Position numbers and translations under genes: made by a program. From IMG/VR virus record IMGVR_UViG_3300046665_000548, positions 496,001 through 560,000 of that record: a stretch of DNA of 64,000 bases; one strand, given 5' to 3'. Positions 8,499 through 62,848 of this stretch are shown piece after piece (within the stretch, counting starts at the first letter, position 1; every line of letters begins with the position of its first letter). Under the pieces are notes generated by a model. It saw nothing but the letters and a program-made list of their open reading frames with translations. It did not search any database and had not been told where the DNA came from.

Positions 8499-10148
8499 AT
8501 GAGCATGTTGCACCACCTTGATACCATCGTAGCAAAAGAGTTCCAGCGCGTAACCGGTCATTCGGTTGCCCGGCTCTCTCGTGCGCGCTTCGAACACGGC
8601 GATTTTCAGTCCAATGCGGCGATGGAAGTCGCGGCTAAGACCGGCCGTCCGGCGTTGGATATTGCTCAAGCAGTTTGCGATGGCCTTAGCCGCTGGACGC
8701 AGATCGGCTCGGCAGAGGTTGCCGCGAATGGGTTCATTAATATCCGCGTCGCGGATCATTATCTTGAGTCATTCGCCCTGCTCAGCCACAAAATCTTTCC
8801 ACGCGAGTCCGGAAAAACGATCATCATCGACTTTGGCGGACCCAATGTGGCAAAGCCATTGCATGTCGGTCATCTACGATCTCTCGTGATCGGGGAGAGC
8901 CTACAGCGCATCTTCCGAGCCTTGGGCGCTAACGTGATCAGCGACGCTCATTTTGGTGACTGGGGTCTCCAGATGGGGATGCTGATTTCCGAAATCGAAC
9001 TCCACGATGGCTCCCTTCCTGCTCAGGCGGAAGAGCTTTTGAAGCTCTATCCTGAGGCCGCAGCGGCATGCGCGGCTGATCCTGATCGAATGAAACTTGC
9101 CCAAGAGGCAACGGCGCGTCTCCAGCATGATGAACCGAATGCGATTCGCATTTGGAAACACGTGACTGCGCTATCAAAGGCCAGCCAGGAACCAGATTTC
9201 AATCGCCTCGGGGTCAAGTTCGATCTTCTGCTGGGCGAGTCCGATGTTGAATGGGCCATCAAACCGATGCTCGCGATTATTGGTGATCGCGCCGAAGAAG
9301 ACGCCGGGGCTTTGGTTGTTCGAGTCAGCGAGCCCGACGATAAGAAAGAGGTCCCACCGTTGCTGCTCGTCAAGAGCGACGGATCGTATCTCTATGGCAC
9401 GACCGATCTCGCAACCATCGTAGAGCGGATGAAGCTCGAACCGGATCGTATTCTGTATGTGGTCGATCAACGCCAAAACCTACATTTCGAACAAGTCTTT
9501 CGTGCTGCTCGTAAATTTGGCTTCACCACGAAGCACGATGGCAGCACGACTGACCTCGTGCATATCGGTTTTGGCACGGTAAACGATAAGAGCGGGAAGG
9601 CGTACAAGACCCGCGAAGGCGGAGTAGCTTTGCTGTCGGACCTTCTAGATCAGTCGGTCGCGAAAGCCGCCGAACGCGCGCCAACTCCCGCAGCGGCCGA
9701 GAAAATCGGCGTGGGGGCGGTCAAGTATGCGGACCTGAATACGTGGCGAATTTCCGGATACAAGTTCGATCTTGACCGCATGCTCTCGTTCGAGGGTAAG
9801 ACCGGTCCGTACGTCCAGTATGCCTGCGTTCGGCTGCGCGCGATCTTCGAAAAGACGACGATCCCCACAGACTGGCGATTTCGCATCACTGCGCCGGAAG
9901 AACGCGCGCTGCTCGTCGCGTGTCTGGATTTCCAGACCAGGGTGGAAACGGCGGCAGATCGTTATGCGCCGAATGAAATCGCGGAATACGCATTCAATCT
10001 CGCGCAAGAGTTCAGCCGGTTCTATACGAATTGTCCGGTCCTCGGCTCTCCAGAGGAACGGTCTCGTTTGTGCCTCTGCGCGCTGACGTTCAAAATATTG
10101 AGCCAGTGTCTATACCTACTTGGAATTGACGTTCCAGAGAGGATGTAG
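8499..10148 (+). CDS. argS: Arginine--tRNA ligase
   Basis: HGDFQSNAAM, DFGGPNVAKPLHVGHLRS (HIGH), HFGDWGLQMG, KSDGSYLY.TTDL, FEGKTGPYVQYA, DALR-like C-terminus. Confidence 0.96.
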   Translation: MSMLHHLDTIVAKEFQRVTGHSVARLSRARFEHGDFQSNAAMEVAAKTGRPALDIAQAVCDGLSRWTQIGSAEVAANGFINIRVADHYLESFALLSHKIFPRESGKTIIIDFGGPNVAKPLHVGHLRSLVIGESLQRIFRALGANVISDAHFGDWGLQMGMLISEIELHDGSLPAQAEELLKLYPEAAAACAADPDRMKLAQEATARLQHDEPNAIRIWKHVTALSKASQEPDFNRLGVKFDLLLGESDVEWAIKPMLAIIGDRAEEDAGALVVRVSEPDDKKEVPPLLLVKSDGSYLYGTTDLATIVERMKLEPDRILYVVDQRQNLHFEQVFRAARKFGFTTKHDGSTTDLVHIGFGTVNDKSGKAYKTREGGVALLSDLLDQSVAKAAERAPTPAAAEKIGVGAVKYADLNTWRISGYKFDLDRMLSFEGKTGPYVQYACVRLRAIFEKTTIPTDWRFRITAPEERALLVACLDFQTRVETAADRYAPNEIAEYAFNLAQEFSRFYTNCPVLGSPEERSRLCLCALTFKILSQCLYLLGIDVPERM

Positions 10149-19191: not shown

Positions 19192-21069
19192 ATGGATTTC
19201 ATGACAGAGACAAAAGACTGGAAGAAACTTAACGACTTCCAACACGCCCGACTCCGCAATGAGATGTATTTCGGCTCGCGCGATCCGCACACACAAACAG
19301 TTCTGGAATATCTAGACGGGAAGCCACACCCAGTAGCTTCCGAATGGGTCCCGGCCGTGTTCACTGCCGTTCGCGAAGTTCTGGACAACGCGTTGGACGA
19401 AATGGTCACGCACGGACACGGCGATACTCTACATTTCACCTATGATCCCAAGACGATGGTCTGTTCGGTCACCGACAACGGACGTGGTATTCCCATCAAC
19501 TTCGACAAAGAAGAGAACCAGTACGCGGCGACTGTTCTTCTGTCAGAAACCAAAGCTGGTCGAAATTTTGAAGATCGGGGAAATTCCCGAGGCATGAACG
19601 GTATCGGCGCATCAGTCGTAAACTTTTGCTCTGAATATTTTACACTGGAGATTTGCCGGGACAAGAAAGTCTTCCAACAGCGGTTTACTGAAGGTGACGG
19701 CAACTCACTGCTTATCGAAGAGCCCTTCATCACGCCAGCTAAGCGTGGTCAGGCGACAGGAACGCGCGTTGAGTTCAAGCTCTCGCAAAAGGTGTTCCCA
19801 AAGCTGAGGTTACCGGAATCCTTTGTTCGTGCTCGTATTTTCGAAGTCGCTTTGTGCTATCCAAACCTCAAAGTGACATACAATGGCCAAAAGGTTACGA
19901 CCAAGGGCACGGTCGAAAAGACGCTGTTCCCCGATACGAAGCCAATTAATTTTACTGTTCGCGAAAAGGGCTTCATTAGTCAGTTCTGGTTGGTACCGAA
20001 TTTTTCGGTTGACGGGTCTGAGCTATCCCATTCTCTTGTCAACGCGATCCCCGCGTTTAACGGCGGAACGCATATCGACGCGTTCAAGCGTCACTTCTTT
20101 TCTGGTCTAATCGCGGCTCTCGAACGAGAGAGCAAGCGCCGCAAGCTTACGCCGAACCGTTCCGATATGGCTGACGGCCTCATGGTGTTCAACATCACAG
20201 AGATGGAAGAACCGTCTTTCGATAGCCAGAACAAGACCCGCCTGATCAACGAGGAATCCTCGAATATGGTCAAACGGGCGCTTGATGATCCTGATTTTTT
20301 CAAGAAGGTCATTCGGAACTATCCAGAGTGGATCGACGCGATATATCAACGCTGTGCCGACCGCACTCAGAAAAAGGATGATGCCGAACTTGCCAAGCTG
20401 GCTAAGAAGAAGCGCATCAAGGTCGAGAACCTGAACGACGCATGCGGGTTCGACCGATCTAAGTGCATCCTCTTCCTGGGAGAGGGCGACAGCGCTGTTT
20501 CCGGAATGGTGGAAGCAAGAGACCCGGAAATTCATGGTGGTCTACCGCTACGCGGTAAGGTGCTCAACGTTTATGACGAGAGCCCTAAGGACATCATCAA
20601 GAATGAAGCCCTCGCCAAGGTCATGAACGCCATCGGTTTAGTTCCTGGTGGGCGCGTGAACCGTAGCATGTTGCGTTATGGCAAAGTGTTCATCACCACT
20701 GACGCAGACGAAGATGGAAAGAACATCGCCGCTCTATTGGTGAACTTCTTCTTCAAGCTCTGGCCCGATCTGTTCCAGGACGAAACCAAACCTTTCTTGT
20801 ACGTGTTCGACACCCCTTTGATTATTGCCGTGAAGGGAAAAACTAGGAAATACTGGTACGCGGACAATTACGATGAGTTCGATCCCGATAAATTCAAGGG
20901 ATGGGACATAACTCGCGCAAAGGGTTTGGCAGCTTTGAAGAGACCAGATTGGGAATTCGCCTTGGAGAATCCGAAGCTGAGACCCATGACGGGCGATCTC
21001 AAAGAATGTCTGGACTTGCTGTTCAACAAGAAGAGGGCCGACGACCGGAAGACATGGATCGGTATGTAG
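19192..21069 (+). CDS. Type IIA DNA topoisomerase, ATPase/TOPRIM subunit (GyrB or T4 gp39+60-like)
   Basis: EVLDNALDE, DNGRGIP, GMNGIGAS (GHKL), EGDSA, PLRGK, DADEDG, KGLAAL. Confidence 0.95.
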   Translation: MDFMTETKDWKKLNDFQHARLRNEMYFGSRDPHTQTVLEYLDGKPHPVASEWVPAVFTAVREVLDNALDEMVTHGHGDTLHFTYDPKTMVCSVTDNGRGIPINFDKEENQYAATVLLSETKAGRNFEDRGNSRGMNGIGASVVNFCSEYFTLEICRDKKVFQQRFTEGDGNSLLIEEPFITPAKRGQATGTRVEFKLSQKVFPKLRLPESFVRARIFEVALCYPNLKVTYNGQKVTTKGTVEKTLFPDTKPINFTVREKGFISQFWLVPNFSVDGSELSHSLVNAIPAFNGGTHIDAFKRHFFSGLIAALERESKRRKLTPNRSDMADGLMVFNITEMEEPSFDSQNKTRLINEESSNMVKRALDDPDFFKKVIRNYPEWIDAIYQRCADRTQKKDDAELAKLAKKKRIKVENLNDACGFDRSKCILFLGEGDSAVSGMVEARDPEIHGGLPLRGKVLNVYDESPKDIIKNEALAKVMNAIGLVPGGRVNRSMLRYGKVFITTDADEDGKNIAALLVNFFFKLWPDLFQDETKPFLYVFDTPLIIAVKGKTRKYWYADNYDEFDPDKFKGWDITRAKGLAALKRPDWEFALENPKLRPMTGDLKECLDLLFNKKRADDRKTWIGM

Positions 21070-21398
21070 AGCAACTGCATAGGATTCTTGAACACCACAC
21101 GAGACCTGGAGTACCTTCGGTATTCTCGTTTGGAACGTTCTGCTACGTGGCAATGGTTGGACGACCATCTCTCTATTCTATTCAAGACGTTGCAAACATA
21201 TATCGGGATTTCATGACTACGAAATGCCCTTATATGGTATGTCTGAAATTCTCGATAAACCACGATAAGATGCGTTTGCATATCCTATCGACTGCCCGCG
21301 ATGTGATTGGCTGGATAGAGGAACCTACTAGCTTTCACACGCTTTATTTCTTCAAAAACCACGTCGATGCCTGTGTTTTTAAGCTTACTTTTGGATGA
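21054..21398 (+). CDS. Hypothetical protein, FKL family, between topoisomerase subunits
   Basis: Ends YFFKNHVDACVFKLTFG; start placed at ATG 21054 to avoid a long overlap. Confidence 0.6.
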   Translation: MDRYVEQLHRILEHHTRPGVPSVFSFGTFCYVAMVGRPSLYSIQDVANIYRDFMTTKCPYMVCLKFSINHDKMRLHILSTARDVIGWIEEPTSFHTLYFFKNHVDACVFKLTFG

Positions 21399-22753
21399 CC
21401 ATGAATTCTAGCGATTATCTCCTTCAATCATCTCGCGAATACGCGATCTACGTTCTAAGCCACCGAGCCATTCCAAATGTGCAGGACGGCCTGAAGCACG
21501 GCCAGCGAATTGCCCTTTGGTTGCTGCGCAGTAGAGCCGAGAAGCTGAAGACATTCGCACTCTCTGGTCTTATGGGATACGAACGCCTGTACGTGCACGG
21601 CGAGGTCTCGGCCAACGACGCCATCGGCAAACTAGCGGCACCTTACAACAACAATGTCCCTCTCATTGAAGGACTTGGCCAGTTCGGAAACCGTGTTGCT
21701 CCAATCGATGGCATCGGTGCGCCGCGTTATACCGAGGTGAGGCGCGCAAAGGCGGCCGAGGCGATCTTGTATCGCGATCTCGATCTTGTACCGCTGAAGG
21801 ACAACTATGACGGTTCGAACAAAGAACCGGTCCACTTTCTCCCGCTGCTCCCGATTGTGCTTCTCAACGGCATCGCGGGCATCGCTGTGGGCTGGTCCAC
21901 CAGCATCCTACCTCGTTCGCTCAAGGGACTGATCGAAGCCACCCAGGACGCTCTTAATGACGAGAAGACCCTTCGTGGCATGGAACCCTTCTACGAGCGG
22001 TTCACGGTCAAGGTAAAGAACACTGGACCTAATCAGTGGGAGTTTAGCGGTAGAGCCGAAATCGAGGACACAAGCACGGTCAAAATCACCGAGCTTCCTC
22101 CAGGCGTGAAAGTCGAGAACTTCCGTAAGAAACTGATTGAGATGGAAGATAATGATCAGATCATCAGCTACACCGACCGGTCGAAAGACAAAATCGACAT
22201 CACGATCAAATTCAAACGCGGCACCCTCAAGGGATGGCGGGAACAAGAAGTATTGGACTTCTTCGGTCTGAAGGACAAGGTTACGGAGCGCATCGTCGTC
22301 ATCGACTGGAACGGCGCTGCTGTTCGGCCGTACGAAAATCCGGAACAGGTTGTTCGCGACTTTGCCGTCTGGCGGCTCGGCTGGTACACAGAACGCTATA
22401 AGAAAATGGTAGCCGATACCAGCTACGACCTCACTTATTGGCAGGCGCTGAAGGCTCTGTTTGATGCTGGCTTCACCAAGAAGCTCGGGACATTTCCCAA
22501 TCGTAGCGCTCTTGAAGAAGAGGTCACTGCGATCACTACCAAGGCCAAAATCGCCCTGGATGATGCACAATTGGATCGCGTTGTTAGTGTTCCAACGTAT
22601 CGCTGGACTAAAGATTTCGAGAAAGAGGTGATTGCGAAAATCACAACCCTTGAGGCGTCGATTACCGACTACCAGTCAACCTTGAAGTCACCAGCCAAAC
22701 TGAAGGCCGTCTACATGGGCGAACTGGAAGAATTGAAGAAGCTCCGCTACTGA
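21395..22753 (+). CDS. Type IIA DNA topoisomerase, breakage-reunion subunit (GyrA/gp52-like)
   Basis: RAIPNVQDGLKHGQR, YVHGEVS, GAPRYTEV (catalytic Tyr), ITELPPG. Confidence 0.95.
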   Translation: MTMNSSDYLLQSSREYAIYVLSHRAIPNVQDGLKHGQRIALWLLRSRAEKLKTFALSGLMGYERLYVHGEVSANDAIGKLAAPYNNNVPLIEGLGQFGNRVAPIDGIGAPRYTEVRRAKAAEAILYRDLDLVPLKDNYDGSNKEPVHFLPLLPIVLLNGIAGIAVGWSTSILPRSLKGLIEATQDALNDEKTLRGMEPFYERFTVKVKNTGPNQWEFSGRAEIEDTSTVKITELPPGVKVENFRKKLIEMEDNDQIISYTDRSKDKIDITIKFKRGTLKGWREQEVLDFFGLKDKVTERIVVIDWNGAAVRPYENPEQVVRDFAVWRLGWYTERYKKMVADTSYDLTYWQALKALFDAGFTKKLGTFPNRSALEEEVTAITTKAKIALDDAQLDRVVSVPTYRWTKDFEKEVIAKITTLEASITDYQSTLKSPAKLKAVYMGELEELKKLRY

Positions 22754-24321
22754 TGCCTGAAGCAAAATTCGATGTCGTATTTTTTGGGGGAACGCATTTC
22801 TCCGAGGGTCCTGGGCGATCAACGGGTATTCATCGTCTCGCTACCGAGTTACGACAAGTCGGATTTTCCGTAGCTAGTATCGATTATTTTACTTTTCTCG
22901 TAGATACAGTATCGCGGGAAACTAGGCATCAAGTCCTACGAAATTTCATTTCAGAGGATACACTGTTGGTCTGTATATCCACTACCCTTCTCAGCCGAGT
23001 GGACAATAACGACAACATCATCTGGTGGGGATGTTCGGCCGATAAAGTAAGACGCTTCATAGCTGAGATCAAAAGTATCGCGCCTCAGGCCAAAATTATC
23101 ACTGGTGGATCGCAAGTCATCACAACAGAAATGCCCTTCATCGCGCATTTCTATCCCGATATGGCGGACTATTGGGTGTGCGGTCAGGGCGAAGCATCGA
23201 TCATCGCGCTCGCAAACCACATCAAGTATGGCGACAATATCGTTACCCACCTGATGGAAGGTCTGACCGTTCTGCTTGAGAAGGACTATCCCTATGATGG
23301 ATTCTCTGGTTCTCGCATCGAATGGCCAGAACATGCCTTCGTAAAGCATGGCGAAACACTCCCCATGGAGGTAGCTCGCGGCTGCGTTTTCAAATGCGCA
23401 TTTTGCACATACGCACTGATCGGGAAAAAATGGGGAGATATGGCGCGAAACGCCGACGTGATGCGTGCAGATATGATCCGCAACTATGAGCGGTACGGCA
23501 CCACTCGCTACATTATGACCGACGATACGATCAATGATAGCATCGAGAAGGTCAAATTTCTACATGAAGTCTTCACCTCCTTGCCGTTCAAAATCGAATG
23601 GATGTCGTACGCTCGTCTGGATTTGTTTTGGAAATACCCAGAGATGGCCCAGCTATTGATGGACGCCGGGATGCGGGGCGCGGTGTTCGGTATCGAAACT
23701 CTACATGATGAAGCAGGAAAGAAAGTCGGCAAGGGTCTAGGGTCTGAGCGCGTCAAGAAAACGCTCGAACATGTGAAATCAGTATGGGGATCGACTGTCC
23801 ACATCTCTGGTCTCTTCATCCTGGGTTTGCCGGGAGAACCAGTCGAATCAATGCAACAGACCTTGGACTATCTGAACCGTCCAGATTGTCCGATTGATGC
23901 CCCGAACACGACGGCGCTGCAAATCAGCAGCGAGCGAGCCGTCAGCAAGATGGAAAAAGATCAGGAAAAATACGGTCTCACCCGAATAGATGAACGCAAA
24001 TGGACGCGTTTCGAAGACTGGGTAACCGATCTAACCGATGCCATTTCGATGCGACGAATGTCCAGCAAATTCTTGAACGAACGCAAAGCTGGACGAACTC
24101 TTTACCGAACCAGAACCTCTTTCTTGCTATTCACTCACTACTCGATAGCTCATCCAGACTTTGTAAACAACTTTCCGGGAGAGTCTGCTGCGGCGAAAAT
24201 CGATGCATTACAGCACGACGCATTAATAGATTATTTCGAGCGTGCATCGGCGTGGCGGCCTACAACGGATTTTCTACCCTCCGATGTCAGAAAATCTCCA
24301 GTGATCAAAGGATTGCAATGA
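22753..24321 (+). CDS. B12-binding-type radical SAM protein
   Basis: ARGCVFKCAFC (CxxxCxxC), DDTIND, FGIET, ILGLPGE; N-terminal cobalamin-binding-like domain. Confidence 0.88.
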   Translation: MPEAKFDVVFFGGTHFSEGPGRSTGIHRLATELRQVGFSVASIDYFTFLVDTVSRETRHQVLRNFISEDTLLVCISTTLLSRVDNNDNIIWWGCSADKVRRFIAEIKSIAPQAKIITGGSQVITTEMPFIAHFYPDMADYWVCGQGEASIIALANHIKYGDNIVTHLMEGLTVLLEKDYPYDGFSGSRIEWPEHAFVKHGETLPMEVARGCVFKCAFCTYALIGKKWGDMARNADVMRADMIRNYERYGTTRYIMTDDTINDSIEKVKFLHEVFTSLPFKIEWMSYARLDLFWKYPEMAQLLMDAGMRGAVFGIETLHDEAGKKVGKGLGSERVKKTLEHVKSVWGSTVHISGLFILGLPGEPVESMQQTLDYLNRPDCPIDAPNTTALQISSERAVSKMEKDQEKYGLTRIDERKWTRFEDWVTDLTDAISMRRMSSKFLNERKAGRTLYRTRTSFLLFTHYSIAHPDFVNNFPGESAAAKIDALQHDALIDYFERASAWRPTTDFLPSDVRKSPVIKGLQ

Positions 24322-27924: not shown

Positions 27925-28000
27925 GGGGATGTAGCTCAATGGTTAGAGCGTCCGCCTGTCGAGCGGAAGGTTGCGGGTTCGAGTCCCGTCATTCCCGCCA
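27925..28000 (+). tRNA. tRNA-Asp(GTC)
   Basis: Acceptor GGGGATG/CATTCCC, anticodon arm TCCGC-CTGTCGA-GCGGA, TTCGAGT loop, encoded CCA. Confidence 0.95.
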
Positions 28001-28001
28001 C

Positions 28002-28076
28002 GCTTCCATCGTCTAGTGGTTAGGACGTTGCCCTCTCAAGGCAAAAACGCGGGTTCGAATCCCGCTGGAAGCACCA
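28002..28076 (+). tRNA. tRNA-Glu(CTC)
   Basis: GCTTCCA/TGGAAGC, TTGCC-CTCTCAA-GGCAA, TTCGAAT loop, CCA. Confidence 0.95.
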
Positions 28077-28090
28077 CAAATTTTGGTTAC

Positions 28091-28168
28091 GGGACGCTCC
28101 TCTAAACGGAATAGGAGCCCTCTTTTTCACAGAGGAGAATGTCGGTTCGAGTCCGACGCGTCCTGCCA
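28091..28168 (+). tRNA. tRNA-Glu(TTC)
   Basis: GGGACGC/GCGTCCT, CCTCT-TTTTCAC-AGAGG, TTCGAGT loop, CCA. Confidence 0.9.
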
Positions 28169-28169
28169 C

Positions 28170-28245
28170 GCATCCATCGGCTAAAGGTAAGGCCGCTCGC
28201 CTTTCAAGCGAGAAATCTAGGGTTCGAGTCCCAGTGGATGCACCA
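28170..28245 (+). tRNA. tRNA-Glu(TTC), imperfect T-stem
   Basis: GCATCCA/TGGATGC, CTCGC-CTTTCAA-GCGAG, CCA; unpaired A28219 in the T-stem. Confidence 0.9.
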
Positions 28246-36336: not shown

Positions 36337-36578
36337 TGTTTTCCACCCCTGTCAAGATGCCGGAGACCACGGGCGGTTACGCGATCATCGCGGAAAACCC
36401 AACCGGCTCCGATCTGTACTTCAAGGGATGGCGTGAAAGCGACGGCGAAACTATGTGGGTTGGGTTGTTTCGCGATGATTACGCTCGCGTGTCCAAAGAA
36501 GATGCCGACCGGCTCATCATCGAATTGCAGCCTCTTATGCCCACCCGCCAACTCCGAGTCGCAGGAATTTTCTCATGA
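36336..36578 (+). CDS. Hypothetical early protein
   Basis: TGATG-coupled. Confidence 0.65.
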   Translation: MFSTPVKMPETTGGYAIIAENPTGSDLYFKGWRESDGETMWVGLFRDDYARVSKEDADRLIIELQPLMPTRQLRVAGIFS

Positions 36579-36784
36579 GCACTGTTCAGGATCACGTCGA
36601 TTCCCTCCTCAGGTCATGGGACGACGTGGATAATGCCGCGCAGCGCGTGGCTACGTCTCTGCCTAGCCAGATGACGGAAGCCGCAGATCGCCTTGAGCGC
36701 GCGAGGATCGCGCATCGCGATATCTTACAGCGCGCCGTGATGGCGATCCACAAGGCCGGTCTCACCGAAGAAGCTACGTCATGA
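36575..36784 (+). CDS. Hypothetical helical protein
   Basis: ATGA-coupled, 69 aa. Confidence 0.65.
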   Translation: MSTVQDHVDSLLRSWDDVDNAAQRVATSLPSQMTEAADRLERARIAHRDILQRAVMAIHKAGLTEEATS

Positions 36785-36996
36785 GTAAGCATAATTCGTC
36801 AGGCTCATATCGCCACAAGATTCAACGGATCGCATCAGATCACTACCGGCTCTATTGGACCGTTGATCGTAGCGTTTCGGGATCGCGTTTGCGCTTCCCA
36901 ACCACGACCAGCCGCGATACCGATGAAGCCGGTGCTGCGCGGTTCGCCAAGCGTTGGAATCTAGACATCTTTCCGACGCCGCCGGAAAAGGCTTAG
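36781..36996 (+). CDS. Hypothetical protein
   Basis: ATGA-coupled, 71 aa. Confidence 0.65.
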   Translation: MSKHNSSGSYRHKIQRIASDHYRLYWTVDRSVSGSRLRFPTTTSRDTDEAGAARFAKRWNLDIFPTPPEKA

Positions 36997-36998
36997 AC

Positions 36999-37208
36999 AT
37001 GCCCAAAGTCGTTGTTACGTCTCTCGGTGAGCTTGAATTCGAGAGTGGCCGTCTCGTAAAGGTGGGTGGCGCTCGTCACAACTACATGGGCGGCGACAAG
37101 CTGCTCCAATTGATTCAAGAATTGTCCAAGCAAATGGATGGCGATCAGTTGATTCGTACGGTCGCGGAAATGGCTCAACGGGTCGGCGGCTACAAGCCCC
37201 GAATTTAA
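36999..37208 (+). CDS. Hypothetical protein
   Basis: ATG 2 nt after the previous stop. Confidence 0.6.
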   Translation: MPKVVVTSLGELEFESGRLVKVGGARHNYMGGDKLLQLIQELSKQMDGDQLIRTVAEMAQRVGGYKPRI

Positions 37209-37218
37209 AGGAAACGAA

Positions 37219-37488
37219 ATGCCGTTATTCACTTTTGCTGTTGCTATCCTGGCCGGAATTTGGGGCGGGGCAAACCTTACGCTAATTATGGTGTTTACTC
37301 TGACACTGATCGGCCTCGTGATCTTTCTTTATTTTTGGCGGACGGTCGGATTTGAAGAACTCGGAGGTCTACTGACGCTCGTTGTGATGATCCACGTGCT
37401 GGCGTTCGTAATTCCTATGTGGGCGACCCACCTATACATGGAACATCCAGGAAGCATCGGTTCGATCAAAAGCGTAATTTTTCGCTAA
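37219..37488 (+). CDS. Membrane protein
   Basis: Three hydrophobic segments; AAGGA SD. Confidence 0.7.
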   Translation: MPLFTFAVAILAGIWGGANLTLIMVFTLTLIGLVIFLYFWRTVGFEELGGLLTLVVMIHVLAFVIPMWATHLYMEHPGSIGSIKSVIFR

Positions 37489-37507
37489 AGAGGTAGAGGA
37501 TAACCAA

Positions 37508-37990
37508 ATGCGTAAGTTTCTCTTCGCCGTCTCGTTGATGCTGTTACCGAGCGTGGCGCAAGCACAATTCAAATCCACTTTACCGCAGGCACCAACGGAA
37601 TTTCCCACCGAGCTTGTCTGTGGAATTATCTCACTGTGGCCGCCCGAGAAGGATGATGATCCGGTTCATGTGGTCGAGGTCATTCCAGGTTTCGACTATT
37701 CGAATAACACTCGCGGTGCGCTCCAAACCCTTCTGGTGAAGCATACGACGATCTTCGGCCGAGTATTCACGCGGTCAGATCAATACAGTGGCGACTACCT
37801 GCGCCAGACGCCGGGTCAGCTTGAGATCATCTGGCGAGGCACGCTGAAAAAGAATGGCGGAGTCAAGATGGTCGGTCGCATCTGGAACGAACGAAGCAAC
37901 GGTCGTTGGTATTATTCCGAAAACATCGAGGACAATGGCCAGCCACGCATGAAGATGCTTGCTGGATGCCACAAGGGAGACTCCGAGTGA
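37508..37990 (+). CDS. Exported protein
   Basis: Sec signal peptide MRKFLFAVSLMLLPSVAQA; two Cys. Confidence 0.75.
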   Translation: MRKFLFAVSLMLLPSVAQAQFKSTLPQAPTEFPTELVCGIISLWPPEKDDDPVHVVEVIPGFDYSNNTRGALQTLLVKHTTIFGRVFTRSDQYSGDYLRQTPGQLEIIWRGTLKKNGGVKMVGRIWNERSNGRWYYSENIEDNGQPRMKMLAGCHKGDSE

Positions 37991-42901: not shown

Positions 42902-43324
42902 CTAGATCGGATCAAGGCTGTTAAGAAACGCAACGCCAAACTTATTGCAGCCGGGCACGACTTGCGATGGCATATCATCGACCAACACAGTACAGCCGTG
43001 CTCTGCCGACTTTTGGCCTTTCCATTCGAGATATCGACCCACGGCATCCTTGTCGTAAATCTTACGACGATTGCCCCAGGCTCCGTAGACCTCAGTCGGG
43101 CATCCATTGACCGACGTGATCAGGTCAGGGCCAACTCCAAGGCTACCGAGTTTCAACGCACCGAGAAGCGCACCAGCGGGATCACGGAACGTCACGATGT
43201 GATGCTGCTTCTCAGGATGGGCCAAGATGTATTCTCGAAAGAACTGCGAATTGCGTCCATCCAAAATAGTACCATCCAGGTCCCACGCGATAGAGGCGTG
43301 AAGATCAAGAACAGGATGATTCAT
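42902..43324 (-). CDS. HAD-superfamily phosphatase-like protein
   Basis: IAWDLDGTIL (motif I), IVTFR, K, LVDDMP (motif IV). Confidence 0.75.
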   Translation of the reverse strand: MNHPVLDLHASIAWDLDGTILDGRNSQFFREYILAHPEKQHHIVTFRDPAGALLGALKLGSLGVGPDLITSVNGCPTEVYGAWGNRRKIYDKDAVGRYLEWKGQKSAEHGCTVLVDDMPSQVVPGCNKFGVAFLNSLDPI

Positions 43325-43472: not shown

Positions 43473-44021
43473 TCACGACTTGTCCCCGTTGATCTCGGCA
43501 ACCATCCGCGTGACCGTAAGCAGCGCCTGACGCTCGGCCTCTGCCTTCATACGCCGCCGAACCTCGGACTGATAGTGTTCCAAGTATTCTTTTTCGATGG
43601 CTTTCTTTACCGTATTGGGCAAATCAGGCAAGTCACCGATTTGATGCGTAAACCATTCGTCAATAGTCTCGCGCGCCGCATCCGTGATGAAATTCATGGT
43701 TTCGCTGGCTTTACTGATTTGCCATTTGCCCCAGGAATCTCTCGATATCCCCATTGCGGCCATTACGAGATCGAACGCCGATTCTTCGACCTTCTTTTGA
43801 ATATAGGTCCTGATATTAGCCGGAGCCCAAATCCGCAGGATTGTGCCAAGCTCGGCTTCCACGTTCTTTTTGAACTGGTCGAGCGACAGGTCAAGGTCCT
43901 GTTTGCTCATCGGGGCTTTTCGAAGGTCTTCGACTTCTTGCTGCACAATGTCGCGGATGAACGCAGCAAGCACCGCCGAGTCGCCAAAAAGGTCAAAACC
44001 TGGATGTTTTCTTTCACGCAT
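43473..44021 (-). CDS. Hypothetical helical protein (leaderless)
   Basis: 182 aa; promoter CTTGAC-N17-TAGTTT (44056-44028) 6 nt upstream. Confidence 0.7.
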   Translation of the reverse strand: MRERKHPGFDLFGDSAVLAAFIRDIVQQEVEDLRKAPMSKQDLDLSLDQFKKNVEAELGTILRIWAPANIRTYIQKKVEESAFDLVMAAMGISRDSWGKWQISKASETMNFITDAARETIDEWFTHQIGDLPDLPNTVKKAIEKEYLEHYQSEVRRRMKAEAERQALLTVTRMVAEINGDKS

Positions 44022-44059
44022 CTGCGAAAACTACCACGCTGTCGTGTTCTGTCAAGCTG

Positions 44060-44895
44060 ATTTCAATAATTATAAGTAATTCCACTGAACTATTTGACGT
44101 ATCGCTTCCGACGATTCGATACTCCGACTACGAAACGACATACGCCTAGGAAGTTATAGGGGTTTCTTCCACCCCAAGCACCATATCCGGGACATTTACC
44201 AGGGCTCGCTGAGACAATCGAGCCGCAGACCGGACTGATGAGGTAGGGCGACCAACGAGACGGAATTCGGACATACCGTTAGGTGTCCGTCTAAACGGCT
44301 GCTCGCGCAATTAATTTTTGCGAAAAGGCACTCAGATAAGAGGAGAGTTGTGTCTTCGTCAGTTTGACACCTCTCCGCATGCGCCCGATCCCCCTGATCG
44401 GTCTGGGCGCATGAGCTTGGATTTTAATCCATAACCGTTAAACCCTCAAGACATACCGGAAGCACAAGACGCGTACTCGTTCAAAGCCGCAAGGCTACGC
44501 GACGCATTATCCCAAAGCTTCGATTGTAGGTGATGCCAGGGTTGAGATAGGGCCGCTCAAGTGAATATTCGGGTAACCGTTCACTGTCCGTAGAACGACA
44601 ACGTGGCTGATCAGGGGTCAAAAGACTCAGGTTGATGACTGCTTTTCTCTCCCTTCATTATCTCTTCGGAGATTTTGCAGGGGGAGGAAAGGTCTGATCT
44701 AGGTTGATGAATTGAACAAATATCTGAATGAATACTCTTCAAGTATTCGCTGGAAGGAATGTCGTAGCGAAGCGAAGCATTCCGAACCGCGTAGGATTAG
44801 CGATGCGTAGCGAGCTAAGCCTTTACATCACTGATAAAAGATTAGTGACTTTTCACAGAGCAATGTGCCCATATGTCGTATTGCTTTGAAAGAAT
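44060..44895. ncRNA. Large structured non-coding region (ncRNA or replication origin candidate)
   Basis: About 830 bp with no ORF of 60 aa or more inside it; many stems, with GCAA and cUUCGg tetraloops on the + strand. Confidence 0.55.
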
Positions 44896-44900
44896 AGATT

Positions 44901-45344
44901 ATGGAAATCCTTATAGGAGATTTGGAGACCAACGGACTTAAGCCGGATCGCATCTGGATGGTCGGCGTGTTGGACTATCACACTGATGAATACGTGTCGT
45001 ACATCGGTGATGACGAAGTGCCGCTTGGCCTTATGCGTTTGGCTGAAGCTGATCGTGTCATCGGGCATAATTTTCGTGGCTATGACGCACGGGTGATTAA
45101 GAAGCTCACGAACGGACTCATCGAGATCGACAATGATCGGATTGACGACACGGTAGAGATTAGCCGTGCTCTGTTTCCAGAATTGGAAAATCATAAACTG
45201 GCAACCTGGGGAGAAATTCTCGGATTTCCAAAGCTCGATTCGCCTCTGTTCGAGACATTCACTCCAAAGATGATCCCTTACTGCGAACGCGATTGCCGCC
45301 TCAATAAGGTGCTCTACGATTTTCTGCTGAGCCGGATGACCTAA
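44901..45344 (+). CDS. Stand-alone 3'-5' exonuclease (PolA/DEDDy-type)
   Basis: IGDLETNGL (ExoI), IGHNFRGYD (ExoII), YCERD (ExoIII). Confidence 0.85.
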   Translation: MEILIGDLETNGLKPDRIWMVGVLDYHTDEYVSYIGDDEVPLGLMRLAEADRVIGHNFRGYDARVIKKLTNGLIEIDNDRIDDTVEISRALFPELENHKLATWGEILGFPKLDSPLFETFTPKMIPYCERDCRLNKVLYDFLLSRMT

Positions 45345-57178: not shown

Positions 57179-59080
57179 ATGCGTTATATTGTTGCCATTA
57201 ATAGAGACGCTAGTCCTGCCGATTTCCTTGCCGAATTAGCTAGCCGTGGCATCGAGGTAACGACTGATTTTCAGGGTCTCACTACATATTTCGAAGTAGA
57301 GGCTGATCCCGATCAGAAGCTCGACATTGAAGCATTACCTTCAGTGGTGGTCATGACTCGATCTGATACTGAAGTCAGCTTGCAAGCAAAACAGAATATT
57401 GGTTTGGACTTTGATACGTTGCCTACACCATATGTGAGCTTCGGTCGCCCATGGCATGGTAACTGGGGCTTGTGGCGCATTGCTAACGCGGAAAACACAA
57501 TTAAGTCTCAGCCGCCTGTGGGTACTCCAAACGTTCAATATACCTATTCGCGAGATGGTTCTAACGTTGACATCTACGTCGTAGATTCTGGCACCTATTG
57601 GTCGTCGTCACTTGGCGGCGGAGGTTCTTTACTTGGTAGAAATTCCCCGCCTACTAAGAAGGGCCAGAGAATTTTTCCTCTCTATGATTTCTATCGTCAG
57701 TCATCCGATCCTCTTTATGGTTCGTGCGTCGGTGGTATCAATCACGGCGAAATCTGTGCGGCGTTTACTGGCGGGTTGATGCAAGGCCCGGCTCGCGGAG
57801 CCCGCATTTACGTATCGCGCTGCTTTAACTCATCTTCAAGCACAAGTTCCGCTGTGGCACATGCCATGGACGCATGTGTTCTGCACCACCGACTGAAGAA
57901 GCTCTATGGCGTCAATCGCCCATCCATTGTCTCGATGAGCTTTGGTGGAGACGATAACAGCCAAATTCCAGCGCTTGATGCAATGATCCAAGAAGGTATG
58001 GTCATCGTAACTTCGGCTGGTAATGATGGAATGAATCTGAGCGACATAACGCTTTATCCTGCAAACTATGAGCCCGGCATCACCGTTGGCGCGACAGGCA
58101 TCCAGGATGAATGGGCGTTTTTCTCCAATTACGGATCGAACATCGACATCTTCGCTCCAGGCCGCCGTCTCCCTGGATTTGTGAATGAAGAAACATCAGG
58201 CACCACTAATCTGGTTAGCGGAACGAGCTTCGCGGCCCCGTTTGTTGCTGGTGTGGCCGCTCTTCACCTACAAGATTCCGCCATTGGTACGGACTCCTCA
58301 ACACAAAACGCTGTTCGTGGCTGGCTGGTAGATAACGCTTTTCGTGATCAGATTGATTTCGGAACAGATATTGATTCTTCGACAACGCCTAATCTTCTCT
58401 TGAATAGCTTCTACACCAGTGTCAGCGGTAGCATTACTTGGATCGGCCCTGGATATAACGCAGCAGCGCCCTTTGAGGCGGGCACATTGACCAGTTTCAC
58501 TGGCGTTAAATGCCAAGCTACGGCTTCTACTAATCAGACTGTTAAGTTCGAGCTTGCTGGTGGCGTACTTCCGTGGGGTATTGTCCTCAGCACCGATGGC
58601 ACCTTCAACGGCACACCTGAGCCAAAGGCAAACTCGGTCAGGGACATGGTGACGATCCGAGCGTACGTTGACGCCGAGAATGGTCAGCCAGCTTTGGAGC
58701 AATATCATAGCTTCTGGCATCAACTTCCAGCAAGCACCTCGATTACGGTTGAGAAGCTTCGCTGGCTCACGCAGGCCCGCCTTACGTCGATTCTTCTCGG
58801 CTTCCCGTATGTTCACCAGGAACTGCGCGCGGAAATTAACATTGGAGGATCGATAGAGTATGATCTGAACAGTGGTGTTCTTCCTACTGGCCTCACGCTT
58901 GATAGCAGCGGCACTCTTTACGGAGAACCAACTGAAGCAGGTACATTTGTTTTTGAGGTCGCCGCCAAGGGACCGTCGAATACTCAAGTTACCCGTGAAT
59001 TCACGTGGAAAGTTTTAGGTCATTACGAGGTCATTGTTGACGGCCCAGTGGAATTCTCTGGAGCCATCGAGCTTAACTGA
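57179..59080 (+). CDS. Subtilisin-like S8 serine protease with Ig-like C-terminal domains
   Basis: YVVDSG (D), NHGEIC (H), SAGN, GTSFAAP (S); LPWGIVLSTDGTFNGTP and LPTGLTLDSSGTLYGEP repeats. Confidence 0.9.
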   Translation: MRYIVAINRDASPADFLAELASRGIEVTTDFQGLTTYFEVEADPDQKLDIEALPSVVVMTRSDTEVSLQAKQNIGLDFDTLPTPYVSFGRPWHGNWGLWRIANAENTIKSQPPVGTPNVQYTYSRDGSNVDIYVVDSGTYWSSSLGGGGSLLGRNSPPTKKGQRIFPLYDFYRQSSDPLYGSCVGGINHGEICAAFTGGLMQGPARGARIYVSRCFNSSSSTSSAVAHAMDACVLHHRLKKLYGVNRPSIVSMSFGGDDNSQIPALDAMIQEGMVIVTSAGNDGMNLSDITLYPANYEPGITVGATGIQDEWAFFSNYGSNIDIFAPGRRLPGFVNEETSGTTNLVSGTSFAAPFVAGVAALHLQDSAIGTDSSTQNAVRGWLVDNAFRDQIDFGTDIDSSTTPNLLLNSFYTSVSGSITWIGPGYNAAAPFEAGTLTSFTGVKCQATASTNQTVKFELAGGVLPWGIVLSTDGTFNGTPEPKANSVRDMVTIRAYVDAENGQPALEQYHSFWHQLPASTSITVEKLRWLTQARLTSILLGFPYVHQELRAEINIGGSIEYDLNSGVLPTGLTLDSSGTLYGEPTEAGTFVFEVAAKGPSNTQVTREFTWKVLGHYEVIVDGPVEFSGAIELN

Positions 59081-60400: not shown

Positions 60401-62848
60401 ATGGATAGGATAATGATGAACTACGTCACCAAAAGGGACGGCTCTAAGGCTAACCTTGATCTCGATAAATTTCACAAGGTAGTTTTTTGGGCAACGGAAG
60501 GGCTCTCTGGGGTGAGCGCAAGTGAGGTGGAAATCCGCTCACAACTCCAATTCTACGATGGCATCAAGACCACCGACATTCAAGAAACACTAATCAAGGC
60601 CGCTGCCGACCTTATCACCGAAGAAGCACCGAACTATCAGTACGTTGCGGGTCGCCTCGTAAACTATCAGCTTCGCAAGGAAGTTTACGAGCGCTTTCAG
60701 CCGTATCGTCTATTCGATCTGATCAAGATCAACGTCGAGAAGGGCTTCTATGATCCTTCGCTGCTCACCACTTACACTGAAGCGGAATGGGACGAGATCA
60801 ATGATTTCGTAAACCATGAGCGCGACATGTCACTGTCGTACGTCGCAATGGAGCAGATGCGCGGCAAGTATCTTGTTCAACATCGCGTTACTGGAGCAAT
60901 CCTGGAGACGCCGCAGATTCTCTACATCCTCGTCGCCGCAGTTCTTTTCGGATCGTACCCGAAAGAGACACGTCTTCGCTGGGTGAAGGACTACTATGAT
61001 TCGATCTCCAAGCATGAGATCAGTCTTCCGACTCCAATCATGGCCGGTGTTCGCACAAGCAAGCGTCAGTTCTCTTCGTGCACACTGATTGAATGTGATG
61101 ATTCGCTGAAGAGCATCAACGCGACATCTGCTGCTATTGTTGACTACGTGTCGAACCGTGCCGGTATCGGTATTGGTGGTGGTCGTATCCGCGCGCTAGG
61201 CTCTCCTATCCGTCAGGGCGATGCATCCCACACAGGCGTCACCCCGTTCTTCAAACTGTTCCAGGCAGGCGTAAACTCTTGCAACCAAGGCGGTATTCGC
61301 AAGGGATCAGCGACGCTCTATTACCCGATTTGGCATCTTGAAATCGAGAACATGCTCGTCCTCAAGAACAACAAAGGCGTAGAAGAAAATCGCGTCCGTC
61401 ACATGGACTACGGCGTACAGTTCAACAAATTGTTCTACGAGCGTTTGATCCAGGGCGGAGACATCACGTTGTTCTCTCCAAACGATGTTCCGGAGATGTA
61501 CGAAGCGTTCTTTGCTGACTATGAAAAGTTCAAGAACCTTTACGAGACCGCCGAACGCAACACTCGTCTACGCAAGAAGAAGCTGAAGGCCGTTGATCTA
61601 TTCTCTTCGTTTATGCAAGAGCGAAAGGATACAGGCCGTATCTACCTGATGAATGTGGACAACGCGAATCAGCATTCGTCGTTTGACGAAACTGTAGCTC
61701 CCATTCGCATGTCTAACCTCTGCTGCGAGATTAACCTCACGACGGTCCCGATGGGGACGGTCCGAACTGAGAACGCTACAATCCCGGTATCTGCTCTTTC
61801 CGACTATATGCTTTCAGCAAGCGCAACGGAGAAGCAGGTAAAGGTGCTCGCGCAGCATGCCCGCGATGGTGCCGAGACTATGGTCGATATTGAGACCACT
61901 GAGGACGCCTCGCGCATCGCTCTGTGCACGCTTTCTGCGATCAACTGGGGTGTCATCAAGTCGAAGCATGATTTCGAACGTATCGCCCGCCTAGCGGTTC
62001 GTGCGCTTGATGCTCTGCTCGATTATCAGGAATACCCTGTTCGTGCTGCTCGTATGCACTCGATGGAGTATCGCCCGCTCGGTATCGGCATCATCAACTT
62101 TGCATACTTCCTTGCCAAGCATGGTGTTCGTTACACAGACGGTTCTGCTCTCGCTATTGTCGATGAGTACGCTGAAGCCTGGAGCTACTATCTGATCAAG
62201 GCATCGGTAGAACTCGCAAAGGAACAGGGCGCATGCCCGCTCGCCAAGAATACCAAGTATGGGCAGGGCATCGTCCCGGTCGATACTCGTAAGCGTGACG
62301 TGGACGGTCTAGTTCCGCATCAAGAACGTCTTGATTGGGATGGCCTGCGCGCTGATCTGAAGACCTACGGCATTCGCAACGCCACTCTTATGGCGATCAT
62401 GCCAGCCGAGACTTCTGCGCAGATCGCAAATGCCACTAACGGCATCGAGCCGCCACGTGCATACATCTCGGTCAAACAGAGCAAGCATGGCGTTCTGAAG
62501 CAGGTTGTTCCGGAATTCCGTCGCCTGAAGAACAAGTACGAGCTTCTGTGGGATCACAAGAGCCCAGAAGGTTATCTTCAGCTTTGCGCCGTACTACAGA
62601 AATACATCGACCAGGGTATTTCGGTGAATACGACGTACAATCCTCGCTTCTATCCAGATGAACAAGTTCCGATGTCAGTAATGCTCAAGGATATGCTGAC
62701 GTTCTACAAGTTCGGTGGAAAGCAATTGTACTATCTGAACACGAATGACGGTGCTGGTGAAATCGATGTCCATAAGCTCGCTGAGAACCAGCAGGCCGAG
62801 GACACGGCGGAACTCGAAGAAGAAAATTGCGAAGCCTGCACAATCTGA
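60401..62848 (+). CDS. nrdA: Class Ia ribonucleotide reductase alpha subunit with ATP-cone
   Basis: VTKRDG, RQFSSC, SNLCCEI, IALCTL, MPAETSA, YY, terminal CEAC. Confidence 0.97.
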   Translation: MDRIMMNYVTKRDGSKANLDLDKFHKVVFWATEGLSGVSASEVEIRSQLQFYDGIKTTDIQETLIKAAADLITEEAPNYQYVAGRLVNYQLRKEVYERFQPYRLFDLIKINVEKGFYDPSLLTTYTEAEWDEINDFVNHERDMSLSYVAMEQMRGKYLVQHRVTGAILETPQILYILVAAVLFGSYPKETRLRWVKDYYDSISKHEISLPTPIMAGVRTSKRQFSSCTLIECDDSLKSINATSAAIVDYVSNRAGIGIGGGRIRALGSPIRQGDASHTGVTPFFKLFQAGVNSCNQGGIRKGSATLYYPIWHLEIENMLVLKNNKGVEENRVRHMDYGVQFNKLFYERLIQGGDITLFSPNDVPEMYEAFFADYEKFKNLYETAERNTRLRKKKLKAVDLFSSFMQERKDTGRIYLMNVDNANQHSSFDETVAPIRMSNLCCEINLTTVPMGTVRTENATIPVSALSDYMLSASATEKQVKVLAQHARDGAETMVDIETTEDASRIALCTLSAINWGVIKSKHDFERIARLAVRALDALLDYQEYPVRAARMHSMEYRPLGIGIINFAYFLAKHGVRYTDGSALAIVDEYAEAWSYYLIKASVELAKEQGACPLAKNTKYGQGIVPVDTRKRDVDGLVPHQERLDWDGLRADLKTYGIRNATLMAIMPAETSAQIANATNGIEPPRAYISVKQSKHGVLKQVVPEFRRLKNKYELLWDHKSPEGYLQLCAVLQKYIDQGISVNTTYNPRFYPDEQVPMSVMLKDMLTFYKFGGKQLYYLNTNDGAGEIDVHKLAENQQAEDTAELEEENCEACTI

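Follow-up and report, generated by a model that had tools for sequence, protein, structure and literature searches.

The stretch analyzed here (the window, 64,000 bp) spans positions 496,001 to 560,000 of a 607,744-bp virus record, IMGVR_UViG_3300046665_000548, whose ends overlap by about 55 nt, so the assembly is circular or permuted. The genome is that of a megaphage, and the window alone encodes ArgRS, a type II topoisomerase, a class I ribonucleotide reductase, a radical SAM enzyme, and four tRNAs. Within it, a minus-strand gene with no family match and a plus-strand gene, whose product has an RNase_H_2 fold and matches phage DNA polymerase exonuclease families, diverge from an 879-bp interval that contains no conserved ORF. 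The only other long stretch without large ORFs (36578-37508) is filled by four tandem small ORFs on the + strand, so this interval is the largest truly ORF-poor gap in the window. DNA sequencing runs holding parts of the region come from freshwater and lake metagenomes, whereas no RNA run was found to hold it.

The original prediction described this interval as gene-free and packed with RNA-like hairpins, and that observation was confirmed: each of the listed stems, the TTGACG element, and the GCGA-rich tract were found at their positions (Table 1). The GAATACT/AGTATTC and AGCC-GCAA-GGCT hairpins are lineage-specific, whereas the other stems are family-wide. The + strand folded more stably than shuffled sequences (z = -2.8) and better than the minus strand (z = -1.6).

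Table 1 Features of the interval, in window coordinates; pairings are within the + strand RNA.
Feature	Position	Strand	Sequence elements and pairing	Observations
Upstream gene	43473-44021	-		182 aa; no family match
Gene-free interval	44022-44900			879 bp between divergent genes
sigma70-like promoter (inferred from conservation)	44094-44123	+	TTGACG (-35) at 44094; 18-nt spacer ending in GATTC; GATACT (-10)	Inferred transcription start near 44130
Conserved core	44143-44710	+		About 570 nt
5' domain	44143-44250	+	P1: CGCCUA (44143-44148) with UAGGGCG (44244-44250); CCGG (44187-44190) with CCGG (44230-44233); optional hairpin GGCUCG (44203-44208) with CGAGCC (44219-44224)	P1 encloses the pseudoknot; per-segment folds agree with the alignment fold
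H-type pseudoknot	44149-44175	+	S1: GGAAG (44149-44153) with CUUCC (44166-44170); S2: GGGGU (44159-44163) with ACCCC (44171-44175)	The C-run can alternatively pair with UGAGGU (44239-44244)
Multi-branch region	44294-44439	+	AACGG (44294-44298) with CCGUU (44435-44439)	Closing helix almost invariant and hence not assessed by covariation; contains conserved strands AAAAGGCAC, AAGAGGAGA and UAACCGUU
Hairpin of the multi-branch region	44306-44322	+	CGCAA/UUGCG	
H7	44342-44376	+	GGAGAG/CTCTCC enclosing GTGTC/GACAC	
H8	44378-44413	+	CATGCGCCC/GGGCGCATG	10 of 10 pairs with double changes
H8 loop strand of the long-range pairing	44390-44399	+	CCCCCUGAUC	Pairs with 44609-44617
H9	44417-44431	+	UUGGAU/AUCCA	5 of 5 pairs with double changes
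Arm of nested helices	44441-44543	+	AACCC (44441-44445) with GGGUU (44539-44543); GAAGC (44459-44463) with GCUUC (44517-44521); inner helices	Nearly all of these helices show double changes; conserved UAGGUG at 44527-44532; replaced by a short hairpin in copy C
Tip of the arm	44485-44496	+	AGCC-GCAA-GGCT; GCC-GCAA-GGC at 44486-44495	Lineage-specific
Three-way junction	44552-44607	+	GCCGC (44552-44556) with GUGGC (44603-44607)	
GNRA-capped hairpin of the junction	44560-44585	+	AGUGAA..GG-GUAA-CC..UUCACU	Stem with 6 of 6 pairs with double changes; tetraloop GUAA, GUGA, GAAA, GCAA or GGAA in different members
Second hairpin of the junction	44586-44599	+		GUARAA-type loop
3' strand of the long-range pairing	44609-44617	+	GAUCAGGGG	Pairs with the H8 loop
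Direct repeat R1	44625-44638	+	ACUCAGG plus UUGAUGA	ACUCAGG nearly invariant
Long hairpin	44642-44691	+	CUUUUCUCUCCCU (44642-44654) with AGGGGGAGGAAAG (44679-44691); tip AUCUC-UUCG-GAGAU (44660-44673)	In all full-length members; tip covaries; U-G pairs make it a + strand RNA helix
Direct repeat R2	44697-44710	+	AUCUAGG plus UUGAUGA	End of the conserved core
Variable 3' tail	44730-44855	+	GAAUACU/AGUAUUC (44730-44748); hairpins at 44756-44783 and 44793-44822; last hairpin at 44828-44848 followed by CUUUUC	Loops of the two middle hairpins carry tandem GCGA(A/U)(A)GCGA; last hairpin a possible weak terminator
GCGA-rich tract	44767-44815	+	GCGAAGCGAAGC ... GCGTAGCGAGC	
Downstream gene	44901-45344	+		147 aa; RNase_H_2/DNA polymerase exonuclease-like

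Diverged copies in the same genome and in related sequences

We next searched the phage genome with the DNA of the interval (copy A) and found a second copy (copy B) at 213.2-214.0 kb, which aligned from a shared promoter-like element to about position 44710 at 66-69% identity and folded at z = -8.3. The genes flanking the two copies are unrelated; copy B lies between a class I Glu/Gln-tRNA synthetase catalytic-domain gene and two further genes without an assigned function. Compensatory hairpins were already evident in this pair, as in AUCUC-UUCG-GAGAU against GUUC-GCAA-GAAC. A covariance model subsequently identified a third, shorter copy (copy C) at 351.8-352.0 kb (40.8 bits, E 2e-11), which lacks one arm but keeps the other helices, the long-range pairing (GGAUUGG/CCAAUCC), and the flanking repeats, and again sits in a divergent intergenic gap.

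To obtain relatives, we first aligned DNA contigs from four sequencing runs to the region. In one run, a related phage was represented by a 149-kb contig covering 44004-45400 with 88 substitutions and 15 gaps, and a second contig resembled copy B. Orthologous DNA was then retrieved through the flanking proteins (retrieved loci are numbered with the prefix L). The element lies directly upstream of the exonuclease orthologue in L009, L010, L011, L015, and L024-26 and in the copy-B position in L027 and L028, but is absent from that position in L012/13, L014, L023, L029, and L031. A gapped pattern built from three invariant blocks found three more members in JGI metagenomes and five loci in bacterial genomes, but none in IMG/VR. 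Overall, members came from JGI and Logan contigs, metagenomes, IMG/VR megaphages, and four bacterial genomes. By contrast, scanning IMG/VR with exact conserved 18-20-mers gave nothing or only chance hits in a tape-measure gene (L003, L004), blastn against the GenBank phage collection gave no match, and a scan for related loci using the exonuclease alone found only distant 40-kb phages without the RNA.

Covariation supports a conserved RNA fold

RNAalifold on the 5' domain (9 sequences) gave 57 pairs, 32 of them with compensatory changes, and on the 3' domain (12 sequences) gave 33 pairs, 18 of them compensatory. Folding each inter-anchor segment separately in each sequence showed the same hairpins at the same places with different sequences. 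We then built a covariance model of 44338-44631 (294 positions, 65 pairs), which scored all members at 110-276 bits. On the alignment of 21 sequences, 9 of which were not used to build the model, 91.4% of cells were paired, against 30-40% when the 3' partners were slid by 1-3 columns, and 55 of 65 pairs had changes on both sides, against 19-26 for slid partners; none of 500 shuffles reached any observed measure. The same analysis was run on 12 and 17 sequences. These alignments were fitted to the model, which leans the counts towards it, and the slid-partner control and the 9 new sequences answer this only in part, although the margin over the slid controls is very large.

Because MAFFT alignments of the 5' pseudoknot and of the hairpin loops were too shifted for column counts, these pairings were tabulated per sequence. 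The H-type pseudoknot was found in 19 family members with 11 distinct S1 and 11 distinct S2 pairings, for example GGGC/GCCC with GCGGU/GCCGC. The alternative pairing of the C-run also covaries, with A-U against G-C at its end, and the two pairings may alternate or share the run. The complementarity between the H8 loop and the 3' strand was kept with different sequences in at least eight lineages, including UUCAGAUC/GAUCUGAA, CUCGAC/GUCGAG, CUCAACU/AGUUGAG, UUCGAUA/UAUCGAA, CUCGCAUU/AAUGCGGAG, and GGAUUGG/CCAAUCC, and the mean duplex energy was -11.9 kcal/mol for cognate pairs and -6.9 kcal/mol for non-cognate pairs. In the nested helices, G-U pairs outnumbered A-C 36 to 16, which points to the + strand. 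AAAAGGCAC, AAGAGGAGA, UAACCGUU, UAGGUG, and ACUCAGG are invariant or nearly invariant single strands.

Promoter, ends, and coding potential

The TTGACG-N18-GATACT element was the best sigma70-like site in the region in a consensus scan. TTGAC-N17-19-TAnnnT sits at the same place before copy B, the orthologues, and most copies in other megaphages, whereas the extended form TTGAC-N13-15-GATTCKAY occurs only at copies A and B in the 608-kb genome. Beyond the core, the tail is variable, although the GCGA-loop motif recurs in phage and bacterial members, including Microvirga soli. A simple scan found no canonical terminator; thus, the 3' end near 44855 is a guess, and both ends are inferred from sequence alone.

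We considered whether the interval might hold an overlooked protein-coding or recoded gene, given that small ORFs of 32-54 aa exist in the gap and stop-free stretches reach 67-125 aa in some homologues. However, each small ORF of the window is broken by stops or frame shifts in close orthologues, and substitutions between copy A and three orthologues are evenly spread over the three codon positions (30/30/31, 27/30/25, and 19/24/22). Moreover, indels are frequent and not in threes, conservation follows base pairing, and the flanking genes read normally under code 11, so nothing in the genome calls for another code. We regard this possibility as remote.

Comparison with known RNAs

Searches with the 4227 models of Rfam 15 returned only tRNAs in the window at gathering thresholds, chance-level hits at E up to 10 on 43900-45000, nothing on the RNA in eight homologous loci at E up to 1, and nothing in the bacterial loci. 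No match was obtained to GOLLD, ROOL, RNase P, tmRNA, group I and II introns, OLE, HEARO/omega RNA, raiA, 6S, SRP, or any self-cleaving ribozyme family, and ARAGORN found no tmRNA. Searches of open-access literature, together with a preprint check, found no description of the family; a description elsewhere cannot be excluded.

GOLLD is a 600-800-nt, multi-pseudoknotted ncRNA of phages and prophages, first seen in lake metagenomes and without an assigned function (PMC12286853). The present RNA is also of phage or mobile-element origin, from freshwater, and of similar size and complexity, but it does not match the GOLLD model, is multi-copy per genome, and has its own conserved promoter motif. 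GOLLD and ROOL usually lie beside tRNA islands in phages or prophages (PMC12286853); here, the tRNAs of the window lie 16 kb away, one relative (L015) has a 9-tRNA array 2 kb downstream, and one bacterial locus has a tRNA 5 kb away. ROOL (Rumen-Originating, Ornate, Large) is a phage and prophage ncRNA of about 580-660 nt with multiple pseudoknots and no known protein partner, in which one tertiary pairing inferred from covariation turned out to be an intermolecular kissing loop in an RNA-only nanocage (PMC12286853). The H8-loop/3'-strand pairing could likewise be intra- or intermolecular, yet the ROOL model gives no match and the motifs differ (UAACCGUU, AAGAGGAGA, UAGGUG, and ACUCAGG). The original suggestion of a GOLLD/ROOL size class is therefore apt as a description only.

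Distribution and genomic context

Among IMG/VR megaphages found through an exonuclease alignment, a complete 578-kb genome has four copies (97 kb +, 218 kb +, 389 kb -, and 539 kb -), a 457-kb genome has four, a 266-kb fragment has one, and two related complete genomes of 417-465 kb have none. The A-type synteny (140-aa protein, RNA, exonuclease) is kept across these phages. In soil bacteria, the family occurs in mobile-element regions of Microvirga and Mesorhizobium chromosomes. Microvirga sp. M2 has two identical copies 17 kb apart, at about 472.5 and 489.9 kb of NZ_CP134063.1, in 2449-bp inverted repeats that each hold the RNA, a 155-aa ORF, and a resolvase, and that bracket genes for an HTH-Dam methylase, DUF5131, a Mu-like transposase, and a Type ISP methylase. 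Microvirga soli R491 has one copy beside a large serine recombinase and an HTH-methylase, and Mesorhizobium sp. KR2-14 has two copies near an HTH regulator, Mrr, and a type I restriction subunit. None was found in a sample of 150 further genomes of the same bacterial order under stricter filters, which does not establish absence. The pattern is that of cargo of mobile elements. A search for a protein encoded next to all copies found only lineage-specific synteny, and the link to the exonuclease is synteny of one paralogue only, as copies B and C and the bacterial copies have other neighbors.

This distribution bears on the possibility of a long cis-acting 5' leader that controls the downstream operon, for example by processive antitermination in the manner of HK022 put or EAR RNAs, or as a giant riboswitch. 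The promoter lies directly in front and the next gene is on the same strand at copies A, B, and C, which is also what a long leader would look like; the next gene is likewise on the same strand in the A-type and B-type orthologues, and no terminator-like site separates the RNA from the exonuclease gene. The put and EAR elements likewise lie directly behind a promoter, and HK022 put occurs in two copies behind two promoters. However, downstream genes are unrelated between paralogues and between phage and bacterial copies, and in several copies of other megaphages the next ORF of 80 aa or more lies on the opposite strand, although gene calls in retrieved loci are crude. The put and EAR elements are 70-120 nt with two simple stem-loops, whereas the pseudoknotted core with GNRA loops is far larger than any leader element known to us, and 200-400 nt of variable hairpins separate the core from the start codon at copy A and its orthologues. 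We consider a leader unlikely.

The original prediction offered a replication origin with a primer RNA as its alternative, and GC skew had been proposed as a check. In favor of an origin resembling ColE1 RNA II or the promoter-dependent T4 origins, a promoter is followed by a structured transcript (inferred here) of about 0.5-0.7 kb, copy A lies beside replication genes (the exonuclease, with a type II topoisomerase in the same window) at a divergent junction with a local cumulative-skew minimum, 3-4 copies are spread around 450-600-kb genomes as multiple origins might be, and GCGAAGC-type motifs and one pair of direct repeats are present. Nevertheless, there is no genome-wide V-shaped cumulative skew; the extremes lie at 1 and 435 kb, not at 213, 352, or 540 kb, and the local minimum coincides with the switch of gene strand. 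GC content of the gap is 0.48, close to 0.52 for the genome, conservation lies in RNA helices with G-U pairs rather than AT-rich or iteron arrays, and nothing resembling the antisense RNA I or a downstream unwinding element was found. The 3-4 dispersed copies per genome and the presence of only one pair of direct repeats also count against an origin. The family also sits in integrated bacterial elements beside recombinases and a Mu-like transposase, including as an inverted pair 17 kb apart, and two related complete megaphages lack it. An origin thus finds no support and appears very unlikely.

A probable large structured RNA gene of mobile elements

The original interpretation was partly supported: a large + strand phage ncRNA driven by the TTGACG promoter is favored by conservation, covariation, the G-U excess, and the conserved -35/-10 pair, whereas the origin alternative is not. 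What the analysis establishes is that the sequence is conserved as RNA helices rather than codons; that it folds into two domains with about 15 helices, a 5' H-type pseudoknot, a GNRA-capped three-way junction, and a covarying long-range pairing joining a hairpin loop of the 5' half to a strand of the 3' half; that a conserved sigma70-type promoter motif lies directly in front; and that the family is multi-copy (3-4 diverged paralogues) in megaphages and sporadic in integrated mobile elements of Hyphomicrobiales bacteria. The remainder is inference, transcription included: that host RNA polymerase produces a stand-alone RNA of about 0.7 kb (~44130-44855), that this RNA acts in trans as a scaffold, ribonucleoprotein core, or ribozyme serving the mobile element, and that it is not a leader, a DNA site, or a protein-coding gene. 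The structure of the 3' tail and of parts of the 5' domain is only sketched, and the 3' hairpins with GCGA-rich loops would probably stabilize the 3' end or bind a protein. We hold a structured RNA gene to be very likely and a stand-alone, trans-acting role, which rests on analogy only, to be likely; a self-assembling RNA-only particle in the manner of GOLLD/ROOL is possible but doubtful.

Only about a dozen classes of large, complex-folded bacterial or phage RNAs are known, and those whose functions were solved turned out to be ribozymes, ribonucleoprotein cores or, recently, RNA-only nanocages. The present family, apparently undescribed, adds one more with unusually strong comparative support, having two or more pseudoknots, 3-4 diverged copies per genome in 450-600-kb phages, and a reach from freshwater megaphages to mobile elements of cultured Microvirga and Mesorhizobium strains, which makes it directly accessible to genetics, probing, and cryo-EM. 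It also gives megaphage genomes a conserved non-coding landmark and raises the question of why such phages keep several old paralogues of one RNA.

Direct repeats flanking the long hairpin

The long hairpin is flanked by direct repeats consisting of CUNAGG plus 6-9 nt that are identical within one RNA but differ between lineages and paralogues. An exact repeat of 7-11 nt at a distance of 71-106 nt was seen in 16 of 25 members, whereas control windows averaged 5.5 nt with a 99th percentile of 8. A search for a complementary partner in cis gave no site consistent across lineages. Concerted change of two direct repeats is not ordinary helix covariation and suggests a common trans partner or twin processing sites; in our preferred view, R1 and R2 are probably recognition sites that act by base pairing.

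Alternatively, the RNA could be a selfish element or self-processing ribozyme in which R1 and R2 are cleavage or ligation sites that release or circularize the hairpin, or the remnant of an ORF-less intron-like mobile RNA. Its multiple copies within genomes, its patchy occurrence across very different hosts and mobile elements, its ribozyme-like size and complexity, and the concerted repeats are in line with this. However, paralogues within a genome are old (66% identity or less) and each is kept at a syntenic site, so transposition is not recent, no intron or self-cleaving ribozyme model matches, and exact repeats are missing in 9 of 25 members; this reading is very unlikely on present evidence. 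A more speculative and likewise unlikely hypothesis is that of a programmable or self-processing machine, in which the variable segments would be guide-like specificity elements pairing with two copies of a target in phage, host, or rival-element nucleic acid, or twin sites at which the fold cuts and joins. Diverged paralogues in one genome (UUGAUGA, UACAG, CGGAAAU) would then address different targets.

Candidate identities suggested by individual motifs were also considered. A hammerhead (CUGAUGAG at 44234-44241) was ruled out because copy B has CUUAUGAG and there is no Rfam hit, RNase P because the GAGGAAAGG stretch is not conserved in copy B, and a T-box (GGGUGACCGCC) because that motif is a GNRA-capped hairpin. 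C/D-box-like UGAUGA/CUGA occurs in the A lineage only.

Additional RNA copies and their genomic surroundings

Beyond the window, the same phage genome carries two further diverged copies of the predicted RNA, copies B and C, each of which lies in a divergent intergenic gap. The third copy, C, is a short form that lacks one arm. Copy B lies divergent from a short gene (295-298 aa) for a class I Glu/Gln-tRNA synthetase catalytic domain, which has orthologues in the related loci L027 and L028 and may be truncated relative to cellular enzymes. Copy C, in turn, lies divergent from a phage gene whose product has dCache and HisKA_2/HWE histidine-kinase domains. Upstream of the A-type copy, the copy within the window, a 140-aa protein with no family match is kept in at least six related phages (loci L009, L011, L015, L024, L107 and L109), making it a candidate partner for that paralogue only. 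Furthermore, one of these relatives, the 259-kb phage contig L015, carries an array of about nine tRNA genes 2 kb downstream of its RNA copy, with genes for EF-Ts-like and HisRS-like domains nearby.

In the chromosome of Microvirga sp. M2, two 2449-bp inverted repeats that are 99.96% identical each carry the RNA, a 155-aa ORF and a resolvase. The repeats bracket a 13.5-kb segment with genes for an HTH-Dam methylase, DUF5131, a Mu-like transposase and a Type ISP methylase. This region may be an invertible or composite mobile element.

Sequence motifs of the RNA and other features of the phage genome

Within the window, direct repeats flank the long hairpin of the RNA. The variable 6-9 nt of these repeats change in concert between lineages, and no partner for them was found. 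In addition, two hairpin loops carry tandem GCGA(A/U)(A)GCGA, a motif that recurs in phage and bacterial members; GCGAAGC is known as a very stable DNA mini-hairpin.

Coordinates of the RNA copies, their motifs and neighbouring genomic features
Location	Coordinates	Strand	Feature
Phage genome, outside the window	213222-213960 (locus L002, about 1480-2190)		RNA copy B
Phage genome, outside the window	351844-352043 (locus L035, 1501-1700)		RNA copy C
Locus L002	322-1209	minus	Glu/Gln-tRNA synthetase catalytic-domain gene
Locus L035	2-1312 (phage genome about 350.3-351.7 kb)	minus	Histidine-kinase-domain gene
Locus L015	5815-8201		tRNA gene array
Microvirga sp. M2, NZ_CP134063.1 (loci L104, L105)	472141-490536		Inverted repeats and the segment between them
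Window	42902-43324	minus	140-aa protein
Window	44625-44638 and 44697-44710		Direct repeats
Window	44762-44777 and 44802-44813		Hairpin loops with GCGA motifs
Window	27925-28245		tRNA gene cluster
Window	36575-37488	+	Small ORFs
Window	8499-10148, 19192-22753, 22753-24321, 57179-59080, 60401-62848		Arginyl-tRNA synthetase, type II topoisomerase B and A subunits, radical SAM protein, subtilase with a He_PIG domain, class I ribonucleotide reductase with an ATP cone

The window also contains a cluster of four tRNA genes (Asp-GTC, Glu-CTC and two Glu-TTC), of which ARAGORN called four and Rfam three. Moreover, a stretch that appears gene-free at a 90-aa cut-off is filled by four tandem, abutting small ORFs of 69-89 aa. 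Finally, comparison of the first and last 100 bases of the phage record showed that its ends share about 55 nt, indicating that the nominally linear record is probably a circular or terminally redundant assembly.
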